NCBI GenBank assembly: GCA_002104945.1
Contig: MCFH01000026.1
Coordinates: 62,001 to 126,000 of the forward strand
Length of the DNA stretch: 64,000 bases
Source: Piromyces finnis finn
Lineage: Eukaryota; Fungi; Neocallimastigomycota
Direction: 5' to 3'
Of this stretch, positions 14,923 to 49,850 are shown one piece after another. The notes under the pieces were generated by a model. The model saw only the letters and a program-made list of their open reading frames with translations, was not told the DNA's origin and did no database searches. Positions within the stretch are counted from its first letter, which is position 1, and every line of letters begins with the position of its first letter. The translations under genes were made by a program, and so were the position numbers.

Positions 14923-17019
14923 ATGAAATTTACAGATTTAGCATCTGCATTACTTTTTGGTACCTATTTTTTTAATACATTTATTAATAAAAAAATTAAA
15001 AAAAAAAATTAAAACTAAATAATAAATTTAATAATATTTAAATATTATCTAGTTACTTTAACAACTGCTCATACTAATTTCATTAAGGATGGCAATCGTG
15101 CCAAACTTTTTGAACTTTTGGATAATGAAGTACCAGATTTCAGAATTACTATTCCTGATGAAGAGTTTGTTCAATTAAAGAATGAAGTTGGTTACCTTAG
15201 CGCTTTAAAAAAGCGTCAATGGGGTGACGGAAACTGGGGTGATGGAAATTTTGATTTTGGAAATTTTGACTTTGGAAATTTCGATTTTGGAGATTTCGAT
15301 TTTGGAGCTTTGGACTTTGGTCAAGAAGATAATTATAAAGTTAAAGATGCTTCTATGATTACTGAAATTAATGGGTAAGAAAAGTTTTATTGAAAACAAA
15401 AATTTATAATTTTTTCTATAATAAAACCAAATAAATTAAATAGTTTTAATTTATAAAAAAAAAAAAATATATTAAATAATAGAAAAAAGAAATCCTTTGA
15501 TAAAGTAACTTTCTCTGTAGGTGGTAGTTCTTCTCGTACCTACGCTAGACAAGCTTTCAATCTTAAGATTCGTAGTAAAGGTGATTTATACGGACGTAAA
15601 CAATTTAGAATTCGTTCTGAAGCTCGTGAAGCTACTCTTTTAAGATCTAAATTAGCTTGTGATATTCATAATTACTTTGGTATGCCATCTATCTCTGCTA
15701 ATTATATTTCATTATATATTAATGATGAATATTGGGGTTTCTATCTTTTAATGGACGCTCCAAAGCCATCTTGGGCTGAATTAGAATATGATGATGAAAA
15801 CACCACTCATATTTACAAATGTAAACAAGGTGGTAATGCTTTAACCTACAAGTCTTGTGCCACTGCATGTGTAAATGAAAATGAAGAAGCTATTGATAAT
15901 TCAGAATGGGAAAGTATTTTAACTGCTCTTGATAATGCTAAATCTGCTGAAGATATTGAAGATATCTTTGATGTTGATCAATTTTTATATGAAATGGCAT
16001 ATGAATATTTATCTGGTTCTTGGGACCACTTCCTTAGTTCTGGTCACAACTTTATTATGTACAAGATGCCAGAAGCATATGGTGGTAAATGGACAATGAT
16101 TCTTTATGATTTTGATGCTGATTTCGGTCAAGATGTTTGTGCTTTAGAATTTATGGGTTCCGTTAAGGACGATAAGGATTATCCAAGTTGGTCATGGAAG
16201 GACTGGAACAACAAGCCACGTCACATTGTTGATATTTTAATTAATAATGATAGAACTCGTTTCACCAAAGTAATGAAGAAGATGATTGATGAAGTTTTTA
16301 ATCCAGAGGTTCTTTTCGAACGTATTGATGAATTAAAGAAATTCATTAAACCATACATCTTAAAGGATAAAACACCTGTAAACGGTAGAATGCCAGGTGT
16401 ACTTAATGAAAAGATTGCTGATGACTATACCATGGCACATTGGGAAGCCAACAGTGAATTTACTAATATTGGTGTTAGTTCATCTAGTTCTGGTTATGGT
16501 TTAAAGTACTGGATTCTTAATAGATACAGAAAGGCTTGTAGTGAATTCAACTTAGATTGTGATGAAAAGTATTTAGATCTTAACTATTATTACGATATTG
16601 ATAGAAGTGTTGAAGGTCCAATTAACACTGAATTTAATATGTTTAACTTTGGACAACAACAACAACCAAAGCCAGAAACTCCAAAAACCACCCAATCCCA
16701 ACCACCAAAACCAACCGCCACTAGTACAACTGTTACACCAACTAGCACTCAAGTATCTAATGATTGTGTTGCTCTTTATTTAGGTTATCCATGTTGTTCA
16801 CCAGACAACACCTATGTTGTATACCAAGATGAAAGTGGTGATTGGGGTGTTGAAAATAATGAATGGTGTGGTATTACAAAGGTCAACTTACCATCATCAA
16901 CATGTTGGTCTGAAAAATTAGGATACCCATGTTGTAAAAAGAACTTCTTTGTTGTTTACACTGACGAAGATGGAGATTGGAGTGTTGAAAACAATGAATG
17001 GTGTGGTATTAACAATTAA
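14923..17019 (+). CDS. cotH: Secreted CotH-family kinase with two C-terminal non-catalytic fungal dockerin (CBM10-like) domains
   Basis: Signal peptide [18 protein letters not shown] (2 introns). CotH motifs [49 protein letters not shown] and [15 protein letters not shown]-rich linker, then two dockerins: GYPCC...[16 protein letters not shown] and [11 protein letters not shown]...[16 protein letters not shown]. Confidence 0.93.
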
Positions 17020-17649
17020 ATAATAAATTAATGATTAAAAAAAATAATAATATAAAATATACATAACACACCATTTTAATTTTAAAAAATATATTCACAC
17101 AAAAAAGTCACAGAATGAAAAATATTTATTTATTATTTATTATACAATTTTCATTATTTATTAAAAATAATAGTAATAATAATATTTAGACCTACATTAT
17201 TAAAGAAAAAAAAAATAAAAATAAAAATAAAAAAATTAAAAATTCTAGTATATATTTACATATATAATATTAACTTGTAAATATTTTAAAAAAAAAAAAA
17301 AAAGTAGTAAGTTATAATGTTATAGTTTTTAATATTATAAAAAAAAAAAAATGTAAAAAATAAAAAAAAAGATATATACAAAAAAGGAAAAATAATATTT
17401 AAAAAAAAAAAAAAAATTTTTTTTTACTATTGTGTTCAAGTGTAAAATCGTGTCAATTTTAATATTATATTAAAATATGTTTTAAATATTAATATAAATT
17501 GTGAAACGTTAAAATATTAAAAATGAATGGAACAAAAAAAAAAAATATTTTCATGCGGTAACTATTGAAAATTGGATTTGCACATCTTTTAAAAAAATAA
17601 CTAATAATAACTTATAAATATAATAATATAAAGTTAACTCTCTATTGAC

Positions 17650-17897
17650 CCCTCTTGGGAACGTGCCTTCATTTATTTAATAAATGTAGTTTCTCAAGGG
17701 GGTCTACTCATGCTCATGGTACTGAGAGAGTAGAAAGAATTAAATCCAAGTATTGCGCAATGGATGCTTGGTGCCCTCTTAGGAATGTGCCTTCATTTAT
17801 TTAATAAATGTAATTTCTCAAGGGGGTCTACTCATGCTCATGGTACTGAGAGAGTAGAAAGAATTAAATCCAAGCATTGCGCAATGGATGCTTGGTT
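17650..17897 (+). repeat. Two tandem 124-bp monomers at the LINE 5' end
   Basis: 17650-17773 and 17774-17897 differ at 4 internal positions (all transitions). Each monomer contains several inverted repeats. Confidence 0.95.
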
Positions 17898-18540
17898 AGT
17901 CTTCAAGGGAAAATTATTAGGACTAAGCTCATGGTACTGAGCGATTAAAAAACATTTTATTCATCAAATTTAAGTATTTGATGAATAAGTGAATGTTTGA
18001 TTTTTCAGGTAAGTTTGTATAGTATTTAATTAGAAGAGTAATACATTTTGTTGCTGTATTTTTTCTTTTATTCATGTATTCATGTAGTACTACTCTTCTC
18101 TTGTAAGAATCCAATGTAGTCAACTTTAGCATTTGCATTGTACTTTTATATTCATGTAGCTATTGTTGTATTGTTTCTTGTAAGAGACTGATTCACTCTA
18201 CATCATGTAAAAATACTATTCACAAGCTTTCTGGTGTCGACATTCTTGATTCAAATTTTTTACCAATTTAAATATTTAATGAAAAGTAAAGTCAAACAAT
18301 TTTAGTGTCAAAAAGCGAATCGAATTTACTAACAACAAACCAAAACTAGAATTTTTAAAGAAAATTTACAACTAGAATTCAAAAAAAAAGAAACTTTAAA
18401 CAAAGCATCGTAACAATTTTTGTACTATCCAGTACTTTTAAGAAGAGAGAGAGAGACAGATTTTTTCCATATACGTTATATTTGTAATTTTTATTAGTAT
18501 TTATTTTATATTCAATATTTTTTAATTAGAATTTATTATC

Positions 18541-21500
18541 ATGTCAGTCCTTTATATTAAAGATAAGAATTATATCAGACGTGGTACCCGGTCTTATGGT
18601 ATCCCCTTAGATGATATTCGCTCCTTCTTTATCCGTGGTATTCGATCATGGTCAGTAAATATGCTATGGGAAAAACTCGAGGTTATTCTAGAAGATAAAT
18701 TTAATTCAGTTATTAGTGTTAAATATTTTCAGACTTTCAATGATCACTTTTTCTTAGTCAAGGTTCATGGTTCATCAAAAGATTGTATTAAAATCTTACA
18801 CATGTTAAAGAAGAAACTTTCAGTTACCTCAATTTCCTTTTCAGCTCGTAGTAGAAGGAATCACAAATACACTTTTTCCACTCTCAAACGTAAAATTTTA
18901 GTTTCTAATAAACATCAACATTCTATTCAACAATTATTTCAACAATCAGTTCAACAATCTCATCAACAATCCGATCTTCAACAAGATCTTCAACAAGATC
19001 TTCAACAAGTTTCCCATCATGAAAATATTCCAGATCTACAGCAAACACAATTTCAATCTCAACATTCAACAATTAATTCTAATAGCTCTATCAACTCTGC
19101 TAACAGTTCAATAGTTGATAGTTCTTCAGTTTCACAGCCATCTAGTAATAGTTCTACTTATTCCTCTGATGCATCATCCATTAATAATGATGACCTTGAT
19201 AATAATAATAACAGCAACGATTCTTCCTCATCCATCAAGCCTGATAACTTTTCTTTTTGTCTTAGTTGGAACACTAATGGGTGGAATCATGAAAAGAGAG
19301 ATAGTATTAGCTATTTCACAGCTATTTTCAAACCATTATTTTTATGTTTCCAAGAAACTGGTAATGGTTCTGGATCGAATACAGATTATCCTTGTCGTGT
19401 TACTTTGCGAAACTATAGACACTTTTTCAAGAAAGCTGATGAATCAGTTCCTGGAATGAGAGGTTTATATTTAGGTTTTCACAATTCGTGTCAAGCCTCA
19501 CTTGAAAACTTCTCTGGAAAGTATATTATTTCTATTTATACTTTTAGTCTCTGGAATAGATTCAAATGCTCGATTGGAAATGTTTATATGCCTCATAGTC
19601 ATCACAACATCTATGTTGATCATGCAAAGTTAGAAGTTCGCTTGTGGTTACAAACTCATTCATCCCATCCATCGATTCTTGTTGGTGATTTTAATATGTC
19701 TAAAGTAAAATTATCCAACTGGTTATCAACTAATGGATTAGGAGATTGGGAAATTCTTCCGCTTAGAGGGTCTACTATCTCTTGGACTCGAGGTGATCAA
19801 TCTTCCGACATTGACCATGCTCTTATCAATTCGAAGATGAAAGATCTTATTCACTCAGGATCATTTATAAATAATTTTTATCCTGTATCAGACCATAAGC
19901 CACTTCTTATTAATGGTAAAATTATTCCTATGGAAGATTTTTCTAATGACTTTAATGTTCCTAAGAAAATTCTGAAATGGAATAGATTAAAATGTATTGA
20001 GGAAAAGGAATCTATTCTCAGTCATAATAAATTCCAAATACTTTCAGCAAAATTCAACGATCCTAATGTTTCAACAGATGAACTTTCCAAAGAGTTTACT
20101 TCAACTGCTTTTTCAATTGCAGACGAGCTCAGTATTACTTCAGCAAATAATGTTATAAAGTCTTCATTTCATATTTCACAACAAATTTTTAATCTTCAAA
20201 AAATCAAAATGAAGTTGTATAAGAGATTTAAAAAAGAAAGAATTTATGATATAGATGAATTTATTAAAAGAATTAAAATCTACCGTAAGCTCATTGATTA
20301 CATCCACAAAAGATGTAATGAATTTAGGAAACAAGAATATCTTCATTGGATTAAAACAGGATGTGAGTATATGAAGAGTCATAATCCTAAGAAGGCCTGG
20401 AAATGGATCAAGAAAACTGCAAAAATTGGAAAAGATTCTTTCTTTATTGCTCAACCAATTAAAAATAAAAATGGAGAATTAGTTGTTGCTACGGAAGAAC
20501 AACTAGAAGTGTGGCATGATCATTTCGAAAATCTTGCATCAGACCCAAGTGGTGTAAGTCTTGATTTGGAGCATTGGTATGAAGAACCAATGAATAAACG
20601 TTTTTCACTTCCTATGCTTGATGAGTGGGATATCAACCAAGATATTAGTATTGATGAAGTCAAGTCAGCTATCCTCTCTACTCCAAATTATAAAGCATCA
20701 GGTCCAGATGGTATTCCAATTGAATTTTACAAAGCATTAATTCCATCAAGTAATGATTCTAATAATGCTACAGGTAATAATTCTTCTGGTAATACTACTT
20801 CAGATAATGACGCTCATGGTTTAAATTTTATTCTTAAATTATTTAACCGTATTTGGGATGGAGATTTCCCCAACTCATGGAATGAATCCAGTATTGTTTC
20901 TATTCCTAAGAAGGGAGATTTGACAGATTGTGATAACTATCGAGGTATATCACTTATCAATAATGGTATTAAGTTGATCTCCAAAATTGTCACCACTAGA
21001 ATCTCAGAATATGGTCTAAAGAATAATTTCATTAGACCTGAACAATTTGGTTTTCGAAAAAAGGAAGAAAGTATCAGTCTTTTCATTTCAATCCAAGAAA
21101 TATGCCGTAGACGTCAATTAGATAATAAAGAGACATATTTGGCCTTTTTAGATCTCAGGAAAGCATACGATTCAGTCCCAATCGGTAATATTCTCCATAA
21201 ATTAGATTGTTTAGGAATCCGAGGTAAGAGTTTACAATTTATCAAAAATTTATATTTAACATCTAAGGCTAATGTCAAATTAGATGGACAATTCTCGAAA
21301 TCTTTTGATGTGAAGAAAGGAGTCCGTCAAGGTTGCCCTCTTTCTCCTATTCTCTTTAATCTCTTTATTAATGATATATTTAAAGAGTGTGAAGATCTCG
21401 GAGTTAGTTTAGGTGACACTCGATGCTGTGGTGGACTTTTTGCAGATGATATAGTTATTTGTGCTCCAACAAGAGGATGCTTAAAAAAGATGCTTAGAAG

Positions 21501-23079
21501 AGTTAATGAATGGGCCTTGTATAATGAAATGGAATTTGGTATCCAGAAATGTTCAACGATGGTGATTCGTCCTGAATCAATAGAAAATCAGAACAAGAGA
21601 GATCCAACATTTTACTTAGCAGGACAACCCATTCCAACTACTGATTGTTATACTTATCTTGGTGTTCCATTTGATAAGAATTTGTCCCTTAAACCAGTAA
21701 TTAAAGTTCTTAATAACAAGGTTTTGAAAGGACTTTTCTCAGTCAGTAAATTCTTAAGAAATCCTAATATTCCTATTCCTTTCAAAAAACTAGTACTTAA
21801 CTCTCAAGTGATTAGCAGAGTTTCATACTTTGCACCATTACTTGGATCCAACAAAGCTAGGTCTAGGATTGCTCAGAAGCATGTTAACAAAGGAATACGA
21901 TGGGTTGCCGGAGTTCATAAAGCCGTATCGTTTATATCTTTATACTCTATCTCAAAAGATTTGAATATTCCTCCATTGTCAGCCAAATGTGCGTTAGCTC
22001 AGGTTAGATGTTTTAACAAATGGAAAAACTCAAATTGTATTATCTCACACCTTGTCAATTACATTCCTAAATTTAGAAAATACACGTGGTGCAAATCAAG
22101 TAGGACACTTGAAAAAAAACTAAAGAAGCATGGAGATGTTAAAGCAGTTAAAAACTTTTATTGGAAAGATCTCAAAGGGAATTCAATCAAAGCGCAATAT
22201 TATGATGATAATAAATTTATTGAAACTAAAGATTTTATTAAATTATGTTATGAGTACCCAGAGTTTGCCTATGGCTTCTACTGGCTATTGAAAGCAAGAA
22301 GCGGATATAAGTTGGATGCTAGAGTTGCCAAAGCTGCTAAATTTGTTGATCCAGTTTGTCCTAACTACTGTCCATGTTGCAAGTGTGGAGATCAAAGTAT
22401 TAAACATTGGTTATTAGATTGTCCAACATTTAGAGATATCCGTATTAAACATTATGATTCCATAGTCCAGCTATTAAATTTTTTCAGTCAACGTAATTCC
22501 AATAGTCCTATCAATAATAATGAAATTGATAATATCAGTAGAGATAGCAATAACAGTAATAGTAATAGTAACAATAATAATTATAACAATAGTAATAATA
22601 ACAATAGTAGTAATAGTAATAATAGAAATAGTAATAATAACAATAGTAGTAATAGAAATAATAATATTAATAATGATAGCAATAGTGAAGATAATAATTC
22701 TAATTTAGATAGTAATTTAGTTAATGATAGTAATAGTTCTAATAATCCGGTGAATATTAATGTGTATGATTATTCTAGTGTGTGCAGTAAAATATTTAAA
22801 TTCCTTCTTGGGGGAAGAAGTTTTAACAATATTAATTACAATTCAAGGGAATGGAAAGAACTTTGTAAGCGTCAGATTCAATCTGGTACTAATGAAGGAA
22901 CACCATTCTTGACGGTAACCGCGGAACTTCTAACCAAAATCATGCCTTTTGCTATTGGCCAGCAATGGTCAATGTTCAAAAGGTTTGAAGCAACATCCAA
23001 GAGCGTCAATGCTGAAGAAACAGTAAGACAGGCCAGGAGGGCCAGCGCAACCAATGGAGATCATAATTTTGTTCCATGA
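18541..23079 (+). CDS. LINE polyprotein: N-terminal RRM-like region, apurinic endonuclease, reverse transcriptase, C-terminal CCHC zinc knuckle
   Basis: APE: LSWNTNG, CFQET, NVYMP, LVGDFN, DIDHAL, SDHKP. RT: KASGPDGIP, IPKKGD..NYRGISL, QFGFR, FLDLRKAYDSV, GVRQGCPLSPILFN, FADD, YTYLG. Zinc knuckle: CPCCKCGDQSIKHWLLDC. Confidence 0.97.
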   Translation: MSVLYIKDKNYIRRGTRSYGIPLDDIRSFFIRGIRSWSVNMLWEKLEVILEDKFNSVISVKYFQTFNDHFFLVKVHGSSKDCIKILHMLKKKLSVTSISFSARSRRNHKYTFSTLKRKILVSNKHQHSIQQLFQQSVQQSHQQSDLQQDLQQDLQQVSHHENIPDLQQTQFQSQHSTINSNSSINSANSSIVDSSSVSQPSSNSSTYSSDASSINNDDLDNNNNSNDSSSSIKPDNFSFCLSWNTNGWNHEKRDSISYFTAIFKPLFLCFQETGNGSGSNTDYPCRVTLRNYRHFFKKADESVPGMRGLYLGFHNSCQASLENFSGKYIISIYTFSLWNRFKCSIGNVYMPHSHHNIYVDHAKLEVRLWLQTHSSHPSILVGDFNMSKVKLSNWLSTNGLGDWEILPLRGSTISWTRGDQSSDIDHALINSKMKDLIHSGSFINNFYPVSDHKPLLINGKIIPMEDFSNDFNVPKKILKWNRLKCIEEKESILSHNKFQILSAKFNDPNVSTDELSKEFTSTAFSIADELSITSANNVIKSSFHISQQIFNLQKIKMKLYKRFKKERIYDIDEFIKRIKIYRKLIDYIHKRCNEFRKQEYLHWIKTGCEYMKSHNPKKAWKWIKKTAKIGKDSFFIAQPIKNKNGELVVATEEQLEVWHDHFENLASDPSGVSLDLEHWYEEPMNKRFSLPMLDEWDINQDISIDEVKSAILSTPNYKASGPDGIPIEFYKALIPSSNDSNNATGNNSSGNTTSDNDAHGLNFILKLFNRIWDGDFPNSWNESSIVSIPKKGDLTDCDNYRGISLINNGIKLISKIVTTRISEYGLKNNFIRPEQFGFRKKEESISLFISIQEICRRRQLDNKETYLAFLDLRKAYDSVPIGNILHKLDCLGIRGKSLQFIKNLYLTSKANVKLDGQFSKSFDVKKGVRQGCPLSPILFNLFINDIFKECEDLGVSLGDTRCCGGLFADDIVICAPTRGCLKKMLRRVNEWALYNEMEFGIQKCSTMVIRPESIENQNKRDPTFYLAGQPIPTTDCYTYLGVPFDKNLSLKPVIKVLNNKVLKGLFSVSKFLRNPNIPIPFKKLVLNSQVISRVSYFAPLLGSNKARSRIAQKHVNKGIRWVAGVHKAVSFISLYSISKDLNIPPLSAKCALAQVRCFNKWKNSNCIISHLVNYIPKFRKYTWCKSSRTLEKKLKKHGDVKAVKNFYWKDLKGNSIKAQYYDDNKFIETKDFIKLCYEYPEFAYGFYWLLKARSGYKLDARVAKAAKFVDPVCPNYCPCCKCGDQSIKHWLLDCPTFRDIRIKHYDSIVQLLNFFSQRNSNSPINNNEIDNISRDSNNSNSNSNNNNYNNSNNNNSSNSNNRNSNNNNSSNRNNNINNDSNSEDNNSNLDSNLVNDSNSSNNPVNINVYDYSSVCSKIFKFLLGGRSFNNINYNSREWKELCKRQIQSGTNEGTPFLTVTAELLTKIMPFAIGQQWSMFKRFEATSKSVNAEETVRQARRASATNGDHNFVP

Positions 23080-23313
23080 CAAAATTTTGATCTTTGGCTC
23101 GGTGTCCCATTGGAAGTCAAATACAATTATTATACTTTAGTATGATAGTGGCTTTCTTACTTTAATTAAAATTACTAGAATACATTATACCCAATTTTTA
23201 TTCATTTGTGTTTATTAAACATATTTTTTTTTATTTTTATTTATTTTTAATTTTTTATTACATGTATTATAATTTTAATTAAATTAATAATAAAGTTTAA
23301 AATATTTGATGCC

Positions 23314-23387
<74 letters not shown>

Positions 23388-23497
23388 TATTGATTTTATA
23401 TCCCTTAAATTTCAGATATTTTATAGTAATATTAATAATTCATATAATAGTAATATAATCTTTAGAAGTAATAATATCAAAGATAATATTTTAAAGT

Positions 23498-23549
23498 TAA
23501 TAATAAAGTTTAAAATATTTGATGCCGTTAAAAAAAAAAAAAAAAAAAA
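23498..23549 (+). mobile_element. Extremely 5'-truncated LINE copy (3'-terminal ~33 nt plus poly(A)) with its own 13-bp TSD
   Basis: ttaataataaagtttaaaatatttgatgccgtt at 23497-23529 is identical to the LINE 3' end (23284-23316) and is followed by about 20 A. It is flanked by aatattttaaagt at 23485-23497 and 23550-23562. Confidence 0.88.
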
Positions 23550-25279
23550 AATATTTTAAAGTATAACTAGTTTAGCAATAGTAATAATAATAATAACAAC
23601 GCTACTTTTGAAATAAATTTTATTTTTTTTTATAATAAATATTTAAAATCTTAATGTATTATATAAAATCAAAAAGATAATTATTGTTTAATAAAAATGA
23701 ATAAAATAATAAAGATATCCATAAAGTCATGATCATATCATATTTTTTTATAAAAAAAAAATAAAACCATGATTAGTATTCATCGTACTAGACCTATTGG
23801 GCTTAAATATTGGCCATAATTAATCATAGAATGATCAATATCATCATTATTTTAATTAATATTAACACTTCTAACCTAATTCCTAATAATATATAATATT
23901 AAATAATATTAAATAATAATTAAAGGTTTAGAATTTCAATATTTTATATTCTTCTTTTGGTATAGAATTCGTACATAAAATATATAGGGTTTTAATATTG
24001 GAATTGTAATAAAGGAAATTAAAAAATACATAACCATTTTGTTTAACAAAGGTATTCGTATAATACAATAAAAAAAAATAAAAACTATTAAAATAAAAAT
24101 AATTAATTGCTGATAATAATTTATTAAAAAAACATAACACTCAACTATTAACAATAAGTAAGTAATAAACATTTTTTCAGTTTGTTTATTGTATATTGCA
24201 TATTTATATAGAAAAAACGAATAGATTTTTGAATATTAGTATCATTTTAAAAAATAAATAATCCATGATTATATACAATTTAAATATCAATTAATCTTAT
24301 TTTTATAATAATAATAAAATTAAAAAAGAATTGGGAATAAAATGAAGATGATTTACAACTAAATAAGAATAATGATTGTGGTTTAATAGCTCTATTATAA
24401 TCTACAATTAGTTCAACATAAGATTCTCTATGTTGATTTCATTCTATTTTTTAATTATTTATGAAATATTTCTATTTCTACATTCTTATTTATGCCTTTA
24501 TATAAAATAAAATATTAAATTATTGAAATGTTTGAAATAAATATTTTACATTTTTATAAATGGTTTATTATTATGTTGCATTTTATATTCTATTGAATAG
24601 AAATTCTTCAATTGAAATTTTCTTTTTGTATATAATTTTAAAATTTTTAAATTATATTAAAAGGCGAATATGATTGGTCAAATAAAACTTTATTTTTTAC
24701 TAAAAAAAAGTAAATAATTTTGTTAAAGTGGGAATAAATAGGAAGGAAAGAAAGATTATCCAGGTGAAATTTTACCATAAAAAAAAACTATTTAAAAAAT
24801 ATTATAATTTTTTTTAAAAAAAAAAAAAAAAAAAATTAATCATAATAAATAAATAAAAAAAAATTAATAAATAAAATAAAAATACTTATTTCAATATAAA
24901 AATCAAATTTCAAAAAAAAAAAAAAAAAGCAATTTGTGCTAAAAAGGATATTTAGCCAGATTATAATAATTAATATATTAAATTATTTTATTATCTTAAA
25001 TATATAAAAGGTAAAATAACACTAAAATTGAATATATTGTTCTTGTGAAAATTGGAAAAAAAATAGTATTATTTGATTTTAAATAGTATAGTATTTAACA
25101 AATGAAATTTTAAATAAAAAAAAGATTATTTTAAAATTTACCCGATTTAAATTAAAATACTTTTAAAATTCAAAATATATATATATAATTACAATGATTA
25201 TTTAAATTTTTATTTATTTCCGAGGAATATCTAAATAACTATATTTTATTGTAATTATTATCATCATTGAATAACAGAA

Positions 25280-48859: not shown

Positions 48860-49850
<991 letters not shown>

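Follow-up and report, generated by a model that had tools for sequence, protein, structure and literature searches.

Why should a long interspersed nuclear element (LINE) and a short interspersed nuclear element (SINE) in the same fungal contig carry the same 44-nucleotide (nt) motif, and why should this motif lie inside the coding sequence of the LINE? The question is raised by a 64,000-nt stretch of the gut fungus Piromyces finnis (Neocallimastigomycota; GenBank assembly GCA_002104945.1, contig MCFH01000026.1, positions 62,001 to 126,000 of the forward strand), which is referred to here as the window. Our data indicate that the motif is a two-hairpin RNA module, and that the conserved entity in the LINE is the RNA and not the peptide that it encodes. 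The module probably belongs to a folded RNA domain at the LINE 3′ end that acts as a protein handle for template choice, with the SINE copy being mobilised in trans. This functional reading, in which we have moderate confidence, is drawn from analogy with other retrotransposons. The two elements and their copies of the motif are as follows.

17649 to 23382, plus strand: full-length copy of an L1-like LINE, with a 66-nt poly(A) and an 11-nt target-site duplication (TSD), CTCTCTATTGA, at 17638-17648 and 23383-23393.
18541 to 23079, plus strand: intact open reading frame (ORF) of 1512 amino acids (aa), referred to as ORF2, with an apurinic/apyrimidinic endonuclease (APE) at aa 241-452, a reverse transcriptase (RT) at aa 788-1043 and a weak zf-RVT match near the C-terminus.
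23001 to 23044, plus strand: LINE copy of the two-hairpin module, placed by covariance model (73.8 bits), RNAfold and alignment.
23005 to 23029, plus strand: hairpin 1, with a 3-bp lower stem, an internal loop, a 4-5-bp upper stem and a 6-nt loop.
23031 to 23043, plus strand: hairpin 2, with a 4-bp stem and a 5-nt AGNAG loop.
48951 to 49513, minus strand: SINE-like retroposon of ~500 non-coding nt and a 60-nt poly(A) (49010-48951), with a perfect 12-nt TSD, TAAAAGAAACAT, at 49525-49514 and 48950-48939.
49102 to 49145, minus strand: SINE copy of the two-hairpin module, with GACC/GGTC as the stem of hairpin 2 (RNAfold; covariance model, 61 bits).

The first-pass annotation of the window had described the two copies as 39/44 identical, and a check of the sequence agreed with it on the motif strings, coordinates and strands: the LINE copy at 23001-23044 (+) and the SINE copy at 49145-49102 (-) differ at motif positions 8, 10, 26, 32 and 42. 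A blastn comparison within the window extended the match to 53 columns (23001-23053 against 49145-49096, E ~6e-11). No third copy was found in the 64 kb by blastn or by a pattern search allowing three mismatches, and a search for diverged copies with a 46-nt covariance model gave nothing above 9 bits besides the LINE and the SINE. When each 44-mer was folded with RNAfold, the same two hairpins were obtained for both elements, as had been proposed, at -13.7 kcal/mol for the LINE (z-score -3.0, with 0/200 shuffles as stable) and -11.3 kcal/mol for the SINE (z -1.95). Three of the differences, at positions 8, 10 and 26, do fall in the internal loop of hairpin 1, where their effect is a shift of the loop only, giving 3+5 base pairs in the LINE and 4+4 in the SINE. 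The remaining two, at positions 32 and 42 in hairpin 2, together turn a G-C pair into A-U, the compensatory change that the annotation had pointed out. The LINE motif is in frame within the final 26 codons of the ORF, and so is indeed part of the coding sequence; the distance from the motif end to the poly(A) is 272 nt in the LINE (poly(A) at 23317) and 91 nt in the SINE (poly(A) at 49010), close to the ~270 and ~90 nt originally estimated. Among the 13 LINE lineages that were compared, the module nearest to that of the SINE is the one in the window's own LINE (39/44, both loops identical). A sister LINE may still be the true partner, as had been suggested, and none is required, since the window LINE is the closest of the 13.

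Do other members of the family keep the hairpins? LINE relatives were found by a protein search with the C-terminal 463 aa of the ORF (Neocallimastix lanati is named among them), and the DNA of 12 further lineages with 41-69% aa identity was retrieved. The module is present in 12/12 of these lineages, one copy each, at the end of ORF2, so that it is shared across the family. In an ungapped alignment of 14 sequences and 46 columns, the structure drawn by the first-pass annotation left 95.5% of the 154 pair cells paired, compared to 10-38% when the 3′ partners were slid by 1-3 columns. The alignment contained 10 double-change cells versus 2.7±1.2 in shuffles (0/500 shuffles), and its covariation score was 0.224 versus 0.119. 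RNAalifold recovered the same two hairpins de novo, minus the loop-closing pair of hairpin 2.

Structural covariation in further copies, on which the first-pass reading had been made to depend, was found at three pairs over the 14 sequences. Pair 6-28 changes from UA to CG in the L086-L088 clade. Pair 32-42 changes from GC to AU in L080, L083, L098 and the SINE, with L084 showing an A.C intermediate. Pair 33-41 changes from CG to AU in L081 and L082, to UA in L090 and to UG in L098. L081 and L082 do not group as sisters in a protein tree from which the module region was left out, and the A-U at pair 33-41 thus arose at least twice; in total there are at least 5-6 independent double changes. 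The strand on which selection acts can be read from hairpin 1, where an invariant G.U pair would become an A.C mismatch in the antisense, which argues for selection on the sense-strand RNA.

A second, degenerate copy of the module (27 bits) was seen at L090:2172-2212, at the end of another LINE fragment ~900 nt downstream on the same metagenome contig, which indicates that LINE copies cluster. A DNA-pattern scan of metagenomes in which the stems were left free returned 79 loci, all of them chance matches and none with the full module, and a scan of viral contigs returned 4 chance matches at ≤14 bits.

Because the module overlaps coding sequence, conservation could also reside in the protein, with KSVNA..TVRQ.SR.SAT being a functional C-terminal peptide and both the hairpins and the SINE match being incidental. 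In keeping with this, no other stretch of the C-terminal region is as conserved as this peptide, its K, S, A, V, Q and A residues are invariant, and the frame is open through the module in all lineages. The codons tell otherwise. Those forming the stems of hairpin 1 (S, V, A, T and V, encoded by AGC, GTC/GCC, GCT, ACA/TCA and GTA) were the same in 283/283 same-residue comparisons, while in the comparison region, the 80 codons upstream, the same codon was used in 821/1316 comparisons (62%) of four-fold-or-more degenerate residues, and 10/13 near-invariant residues there use 2-3 codons. The residues that do vary are the ones encoded by loops: the 6-nt loop of hairpin 1 exists in 8 versions that alter the amino acids. 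In one clade, a V-to-A replacement is offset by a synonymous AGA-to-AGG change.

The two facing codons of hairpin 2 determine the paired bases, which can be read from peptides alone for this reason. Among 47 distinct C-terminal peptides, the facing residues were A-A in 28, D-S in 5, T-V in 2, and I-V, V-T and V-A (a wobble) in 1 each, with 5 mismatching singles. The A-A, D-S, T-V and V-T couplings have no physicochemical logic and match base pairing exactly. In the SINE, where the frame meets a stop after 9 codons, the module is kept although it codes for nothing. An AlphaFold model (14-sequence alignment, mean predicted local distance difference test score, pLDDT, of 59) predicted the module-encoded tail, model aa 438-463, at a pLDDT of ~30 directly after a helix at ~90, and weakly suggests that this peptide is unstructured. 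Moreover, the position of the stop codon shifts among lineages, from +66 to >+117 nt (+78 nt in 6 lineages), and the module is fixed. The frozen synonymous sites of the stems, the hypervariable loop and the predicted disorder of the peptide together show that the RNA rather than the peptide is conserved, and conservation of the protein alone is highly improbable as an explanation. It is reasonably likely, as one part of the whole explanation, that a sense-strand RNA fold is under selection and that the final 26 codons of ORF2 in effect follow from it.

The first-pass annotation had also raised self-cleavage, for which no support was found. A self-cleaving ribozyme, or another known catalytic or regulatory RNA, might be called to mind by the CUGAAGA..GAAAC string, which superficially resembles hammerhead core motifs. 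However, this supposed core falls in the hypervariable loop of hairpin 1, no Rfam family reached its gathering threshold in the window, and with the limit relaxed to E≤10 nothing matched the SINE stretch and the LINE tail had three chance-level matches, all to non-ribozyme families. We give this explanation almost no weight.

How far does the shared structure extend? On comparison of the elements, the shared part is a 3′ domain of ~120 nt rather than an isolated 44-mer. In the LINE its order is AAGAGCG, hairpin 1, a single A, hairpin 2, GCGCAACC, a variable third hairpin with the ORF2 stop codon, and GGAAGTCAAA. The parts beyond the module, with the corresponding SINE end, are listed below.

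23045 to 23052, plus strand: conserved single-stranded linker GCGCAACC, present in 9/11 LINE lineages.
23051 to 23113, plus strand: hairpin 3, variable in sequence and length by lineage, holding the stop codon at 23077-23079.
23112 to 23121, plus strand: conserved box GGAAGTCAAA that closes the structured domain, with 0-2 mismatches in 9/11 lineages.
23122 to 23316, plus strand: distal AT/T-rich 3′ untranslated region (UTR) of the LINE, with conserved blocks TACATTATACC, ACATGTAT and AATAAA.
49011 to 49017, minus strand: SINE end GGAAGTT, which runs straight into the poly(A), the counterpart of the LINE box GGAAGTCAAA.

Support for hairpin 3 comes from per-lineage folds alone. In the window LINE it folds end to end at -22.4 kcal/mol (z -3.3), and for 8/9 lineages the sequence bounded by the two boxes folds over its full length, with z of -1.3 to -5.1. 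Rigid-register complementarity (5.9 pairs of 8 within the own lineage versus 5.1 with other lineages) is too weak to count. A closing helix round the whole domain (GAGC with a downstream GCTC) was seen in some folds and was rejected as not conserved.

The SINE 3′ region is homologous to that of the resident LINE and keeps the same order of boxes after the motif: hairpin 1, hairpin 2, CAACC, one or more hairpins, and GGAAGTT. The poly(A) of the SINE takes over precisely where the box corresponding to GGAAGTCAAA has its A-run. The statement that the sequence after the motif differs in the two elements was therefore too simple, as both go on with a CAACC box, one or more hairpins and a GGAAGT(C/T)AAA box. 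As for the proposed LINE/SINE system of gut fungi, the two-hairpin RNA stands, being present in all sampled LINE lineages, covarying, synonymously constrained and common to a SINE-like retroposon; the isolated 44-mer gives way to the larger domain.

Past GGAAGTCAAA, the LINE continues for a further 190-300 nt, which are T-rich and contain TACATTATACC, ACATGTAT, AATAAA and a small terminal hairpin. Neither the distal blocks nor the terminal hairpin was found in the SINE. The absence would be understandable, since an RNA polymerase III transcript could not carry the T-runs and AATAAA is an RNA polymerase II signal. The distal blocks may be RNA polymerase II 3′-end signals or a second recognition element. 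They are kept in the window LINE, L080, L086, L087, L088 and L090, with AATAAA lying 25-30 nt before the poly(A).

One LINE clade carries an extra hairpin of ~25 nt, in frame, between hairpin 2 and GCAACC (GCTACT in L087 and L088). It is located at L086:3879-3905, L087:4911-4937 and L088:4952-4978, adds 8-9 codons to the ORF, and has compensatory changes of its own (CATATC/GATATG versus CATATT/AATATG).

What kind of element is the partner? The SINE is short, non-coding (with no ORF) and of high copy number, and it has a TSD and an A-rich tail. Its head contains a B-box-like sequence, as read from the letters:

49487 to 49477, minus strand: B-box-like GGTTCGACCCC in the SINE.

ARAGORN detected no tRNA in either element and Rfam gave no match to the SINE at E≤10, and blastn found no similarity between the SINE body and the LINE 5′ region. 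In a DNA run from the probable source sample, 853 contigs match the SINE, and in RNA libraries contigs from three organisms (X1, X6 and X11) match it with 0-1 differences. An apparent 5′ end of RNA contigs at 49512 was a repeat-masking artefact and was not used.

Across the whole SINE, three positions only vary at a share of ≥5% in the DNA run. Two of these, 8 (G>A) and 32 (A>G) in motif numbering, fall within the module, and both change toward the LINE state; a G at position 32 opposite the U at position 42 is a wobble pair, the classical intermediate. As positions 10, 26 and 42 do not co-vary, these contigs represent SINE variants and not LINEs. Depth over the module bins is ~1.5x that of the SINE flanks, and LINE-type sequence begins at both module borders in loose ends, which indicates that several families keep the module. 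In the body of the SINE, at 49257-49358 (-), single contigs skip 66-100 nt and one swaps 91 nt for 101 others, and 12 loose ends diverge at 49189. These skipped or replaced stretches and loose ends indicate SINE subfamilies with different bodies.

What, then, would the domain do? In human L1, ORF2p binds single-stranded poly(A) together with an upstream template stem-loop on a C-terminal, thumb and RNA-binding surface, and the upstream stem-loop helps Alu to compete for the L1 enzyme (PMC10830416). L1-clade LINE/SINE pairs with a common covarying 3′ hairpin have been described in maize and Chlamydomonas (PMC3747384). By analogy with these systems, the module may be recognised by the RT: the ORF2 protein of the LINE would bind the hairpin module, or anchor there, with the poly(A) lying downstream, and at a nicked target rich in T/A it would then use this poly(A) to prime reverse transcription, which is target-primed reverse transcription (TPRT). 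The SINE would be an abundant non-autonomous retroposon with its own hairpins 1 and 2 and flanking boxes and with a templated poly(A) starting from the site of the LINE box, and, by offering the handle that the LINE has, it would be mobilised in trans. Under this model, the module would be needed for retrotransposition.

A bolder version is also possible, which we consider rather doubtful. The domain may span the ORF2 stop as a translation-coupled capture device, the SINE being a mimic that offers the handle in trans. The terminating ribosome would melt hairpins 1 to 3, and their refolding beside the freshly released ORF2 protein, which binds them, would give rise to cis-preference. If this is true, the final 26 codons in a gene of an active retrotransposon are set by RNA structure and not by protein function, a dual-coding arrangement that has not been described for L1-like elements.

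Several observations weigh against recognition of the module by the LINE protein in both elements, or against the structure on which it is founded. The upper stem of hairpin 1 is invariant and hence provides no covariation evidence. Single pairs are broken in L087 and L088 (U.U at the closing pair of hairpin 2), in L090 (U.U in the lower stem of hairpin 1, where a shifted register with wobble pairs is possible) and in L098, which is a decayed copy. The alignment holds 14 sequences only, phylogeny is not taken into account in the shuffles, and one of the aligned sequences was the source of the structure that was tested. The shared module is not at the extreme 3′ end, unlike the classical stringent tails that adjoin 3′ repeats, and in the LINE the distance is 272 nt. 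In the SINE, the equivalent of hairpin 3 lacks significant stability (z -0.67) and could not be aligned with any LINE lineage. Finally, with three sites at ≥5%, the SINE copies are too alike for selection to be tested within the SINE, and the SINE module could be a young relic.

In the form of a full explanation, the relic reading holds that the module serves the LINE only, for example by acting at the ORF2 stop in the termination of translation, in cis-preference or in the metabolism of the mRNA, and that the SINE acquired a LINE fragment by template switching and moves via its poly(A) alone, like Alu. The near-uniform SINE copies without a sign of selection on the module and the lack of conservation of hairpin 3 in the SINE fit this well. 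So does the nature of the LINE: it is L1-like, its poly(A) is long and its target is rich in T/A, and LINEs of this type are able to operate with poly(A) alone (PMC3747384). However, identity to the LINE is 89% in the module, while the 90 nt that follow it in the SINE tail can hardly be aligned to any LINE lineage. All five differences keep the fold, with one double change among them, the variant often seen at position 32 of the SINE makes a G.U pair and not a mismatch, and the depth and loose ends at the module borders point to several families. On balance, we regard a passive relic as unlikely.

It is also conceivable that in both elements the module stabilises the RNA, localises it or associates it with ribosomes, for instance via a host protein, without direct recognition by the LINE RT. 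The module does lie well inside the LINE transcript and not at its end, the single-stranded boxes AAGAGCG, GCAACC and GGAAGTCAAA could be host-protein sites, and Alu reaches ribosomes through a host-protein-binding fold (PMC10830416). Against this, no match to curated RNA families or known host-factor motifs was found, and in the sampled material the module is confined to the LINE family and the SINE, with one match per LINE locus, no others in the rest of these loci, and two in 64 kb. A host factor in place of the LINE protein seems quite unlikely to us, and template choice by the LINE protein is still the reading that we favour.

How does the system compare to those already known? It resembles the stringent LINE/SINE pairs (eel UnaL2/UnaSINE1, maize LINE1-1 with ZmSINE2/3, and Chlamydomonas L1-1_CR with SINEX-3_CR) in that the SINE 3′ region is homologous to the LINE and in that a small hairpin structure is shared, with compensatory stem changes and conserved unpaired nucleotides; the L1-clade pairs of maize and Chlamydomonas also have poly(A) ends (PMC3747384). 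In contrast to these pairs, the module here overlaps the final 26 codons of ORF2, far upstream of the LINE poly(A), the LINE has a further conserved 3′ UTR that is missing from the SINE, two hairpins with flanking boxes take the place of one terminal stem-loop, and the host belongs to an early-diverging fungal phylum. The system of human L1 ORF2p and Alu is similar in that the protein is an L1-like APE-RT, TPRT is primed by poly(A) at a nick rich in T/A, and the poly(A) of the SINE is templated, and there too a template stem-loop upstream of the poly(A), lying on the enzyme surface, aids the SINE in competition (PMC10830416). The Alu stem-loop is derived from 7SL and is not shared with L1, whose 3′ UTR is without such a stem-loop (PMC10830416), whereas here the LINE itself bears the structure and the SINE copies it.

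A third comparison is with LINEs of the RTE/Bov-B type, from which the present LINE differs in being L1-like. Those elements have very short 3′ UTRs, so that LINE-derived SINE tails can extend into the end of the ORF, and the part shared with their SINEs is the true 3′ terminus. We know of no dual constraint of coding and structure that has been documented for them.

That a SINE borrows the RNA structure of its LINE is already well known. What sets this case apart is the overlap with the last 26 codons of ORF2, the internal position in the LINE 3′ region, the two-hairpin core within a three-hairpin domain across the stop codon, and a setting in which the element is L1-like with poly(A) and the fungus is early-diverging. 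Among the papers searched, no report of SINEs, or of such a LINE/SINE system, in Neocallimastigomycota was found. For a LINE of L1-like type that is apparently active, and for its SINE, the locus provides a candidate recognition element that is defined in sequence and backed by covariation. Since the element overlaps coding sequence, it also provides a clean natural case in which selection on RNA structure overrides codon freedom. It may be a bridge between 'stringent' recognition of shared hairpins and 'relaxed' poly(A) priming, and recent structures of L1 ORF2p suggest that the two modes are two halves of one mechanism. In practice, the covariance model offers a specific marker for annotating such repeats in the genomes of anaerobic fungi and in rumen metagenomes.

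Is the LINE itself of the type that this comparison assumes, and has it moved recently? Domain matches in its ORF were Exo_endo_phos (E 8e-7, aa 241-452), RVT_1 (E 1e-35, aa 788-1043) and a weak zf-RVT, and the closest solved structure in the PDB was human L1 ORF2p (E 3e-33), with R2 at E 3e-18. Judged by domain order and closest structure, the element is an L1-like, APE-type, poly(A) non-LTR (long terminal repeat) retrotransposon. Marks of retroposition are A66 and an 11-nt TSD for the LINE, A60 and a 12-nt TSD for the SINE, and A22 and a 12-nt TSD for a truncated copy; the TSDs start within or beside A-runs, and the insertion site is T/A-rich. Both the LINE and the SINE inserted recently, and the LINE is apparently active, judging by the intact ORF and by the perfect TSDs and 60-66-nt poly(A) on both elements. 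The LINE tail and the SINE were both found in the same RNA and DNA sequencing runs of one organism.

The truncated copy, at 23498-23551 (+), was dead on arrival and consists of the final 32 nt of the LINE 3′ end and A22 only. Its 12-nt TSD, ATATTTTAAAGT, is at 23486-23497 and from 23552, and it lies 115 nt downstream of the full-length LINE. This copy points to recent activity primed on poly(A), with nearly the whole 5′ part of the element lost.

The 5′ extremity of the LINE, at 17650-17896 (+), consists of two 123-nt tandem monomers that are 97% identical and may be promoter units, and a GTAAGT-type intron-like site is seen deeper in the 890-nt leader. Directly upstream of the LINE insertion, at 15682-17019 (+), is a host gene with a CotH kinase-like domain and two CBM_10 dockerin repeats, a type of gene that is typical of anaerobic gut fungi.

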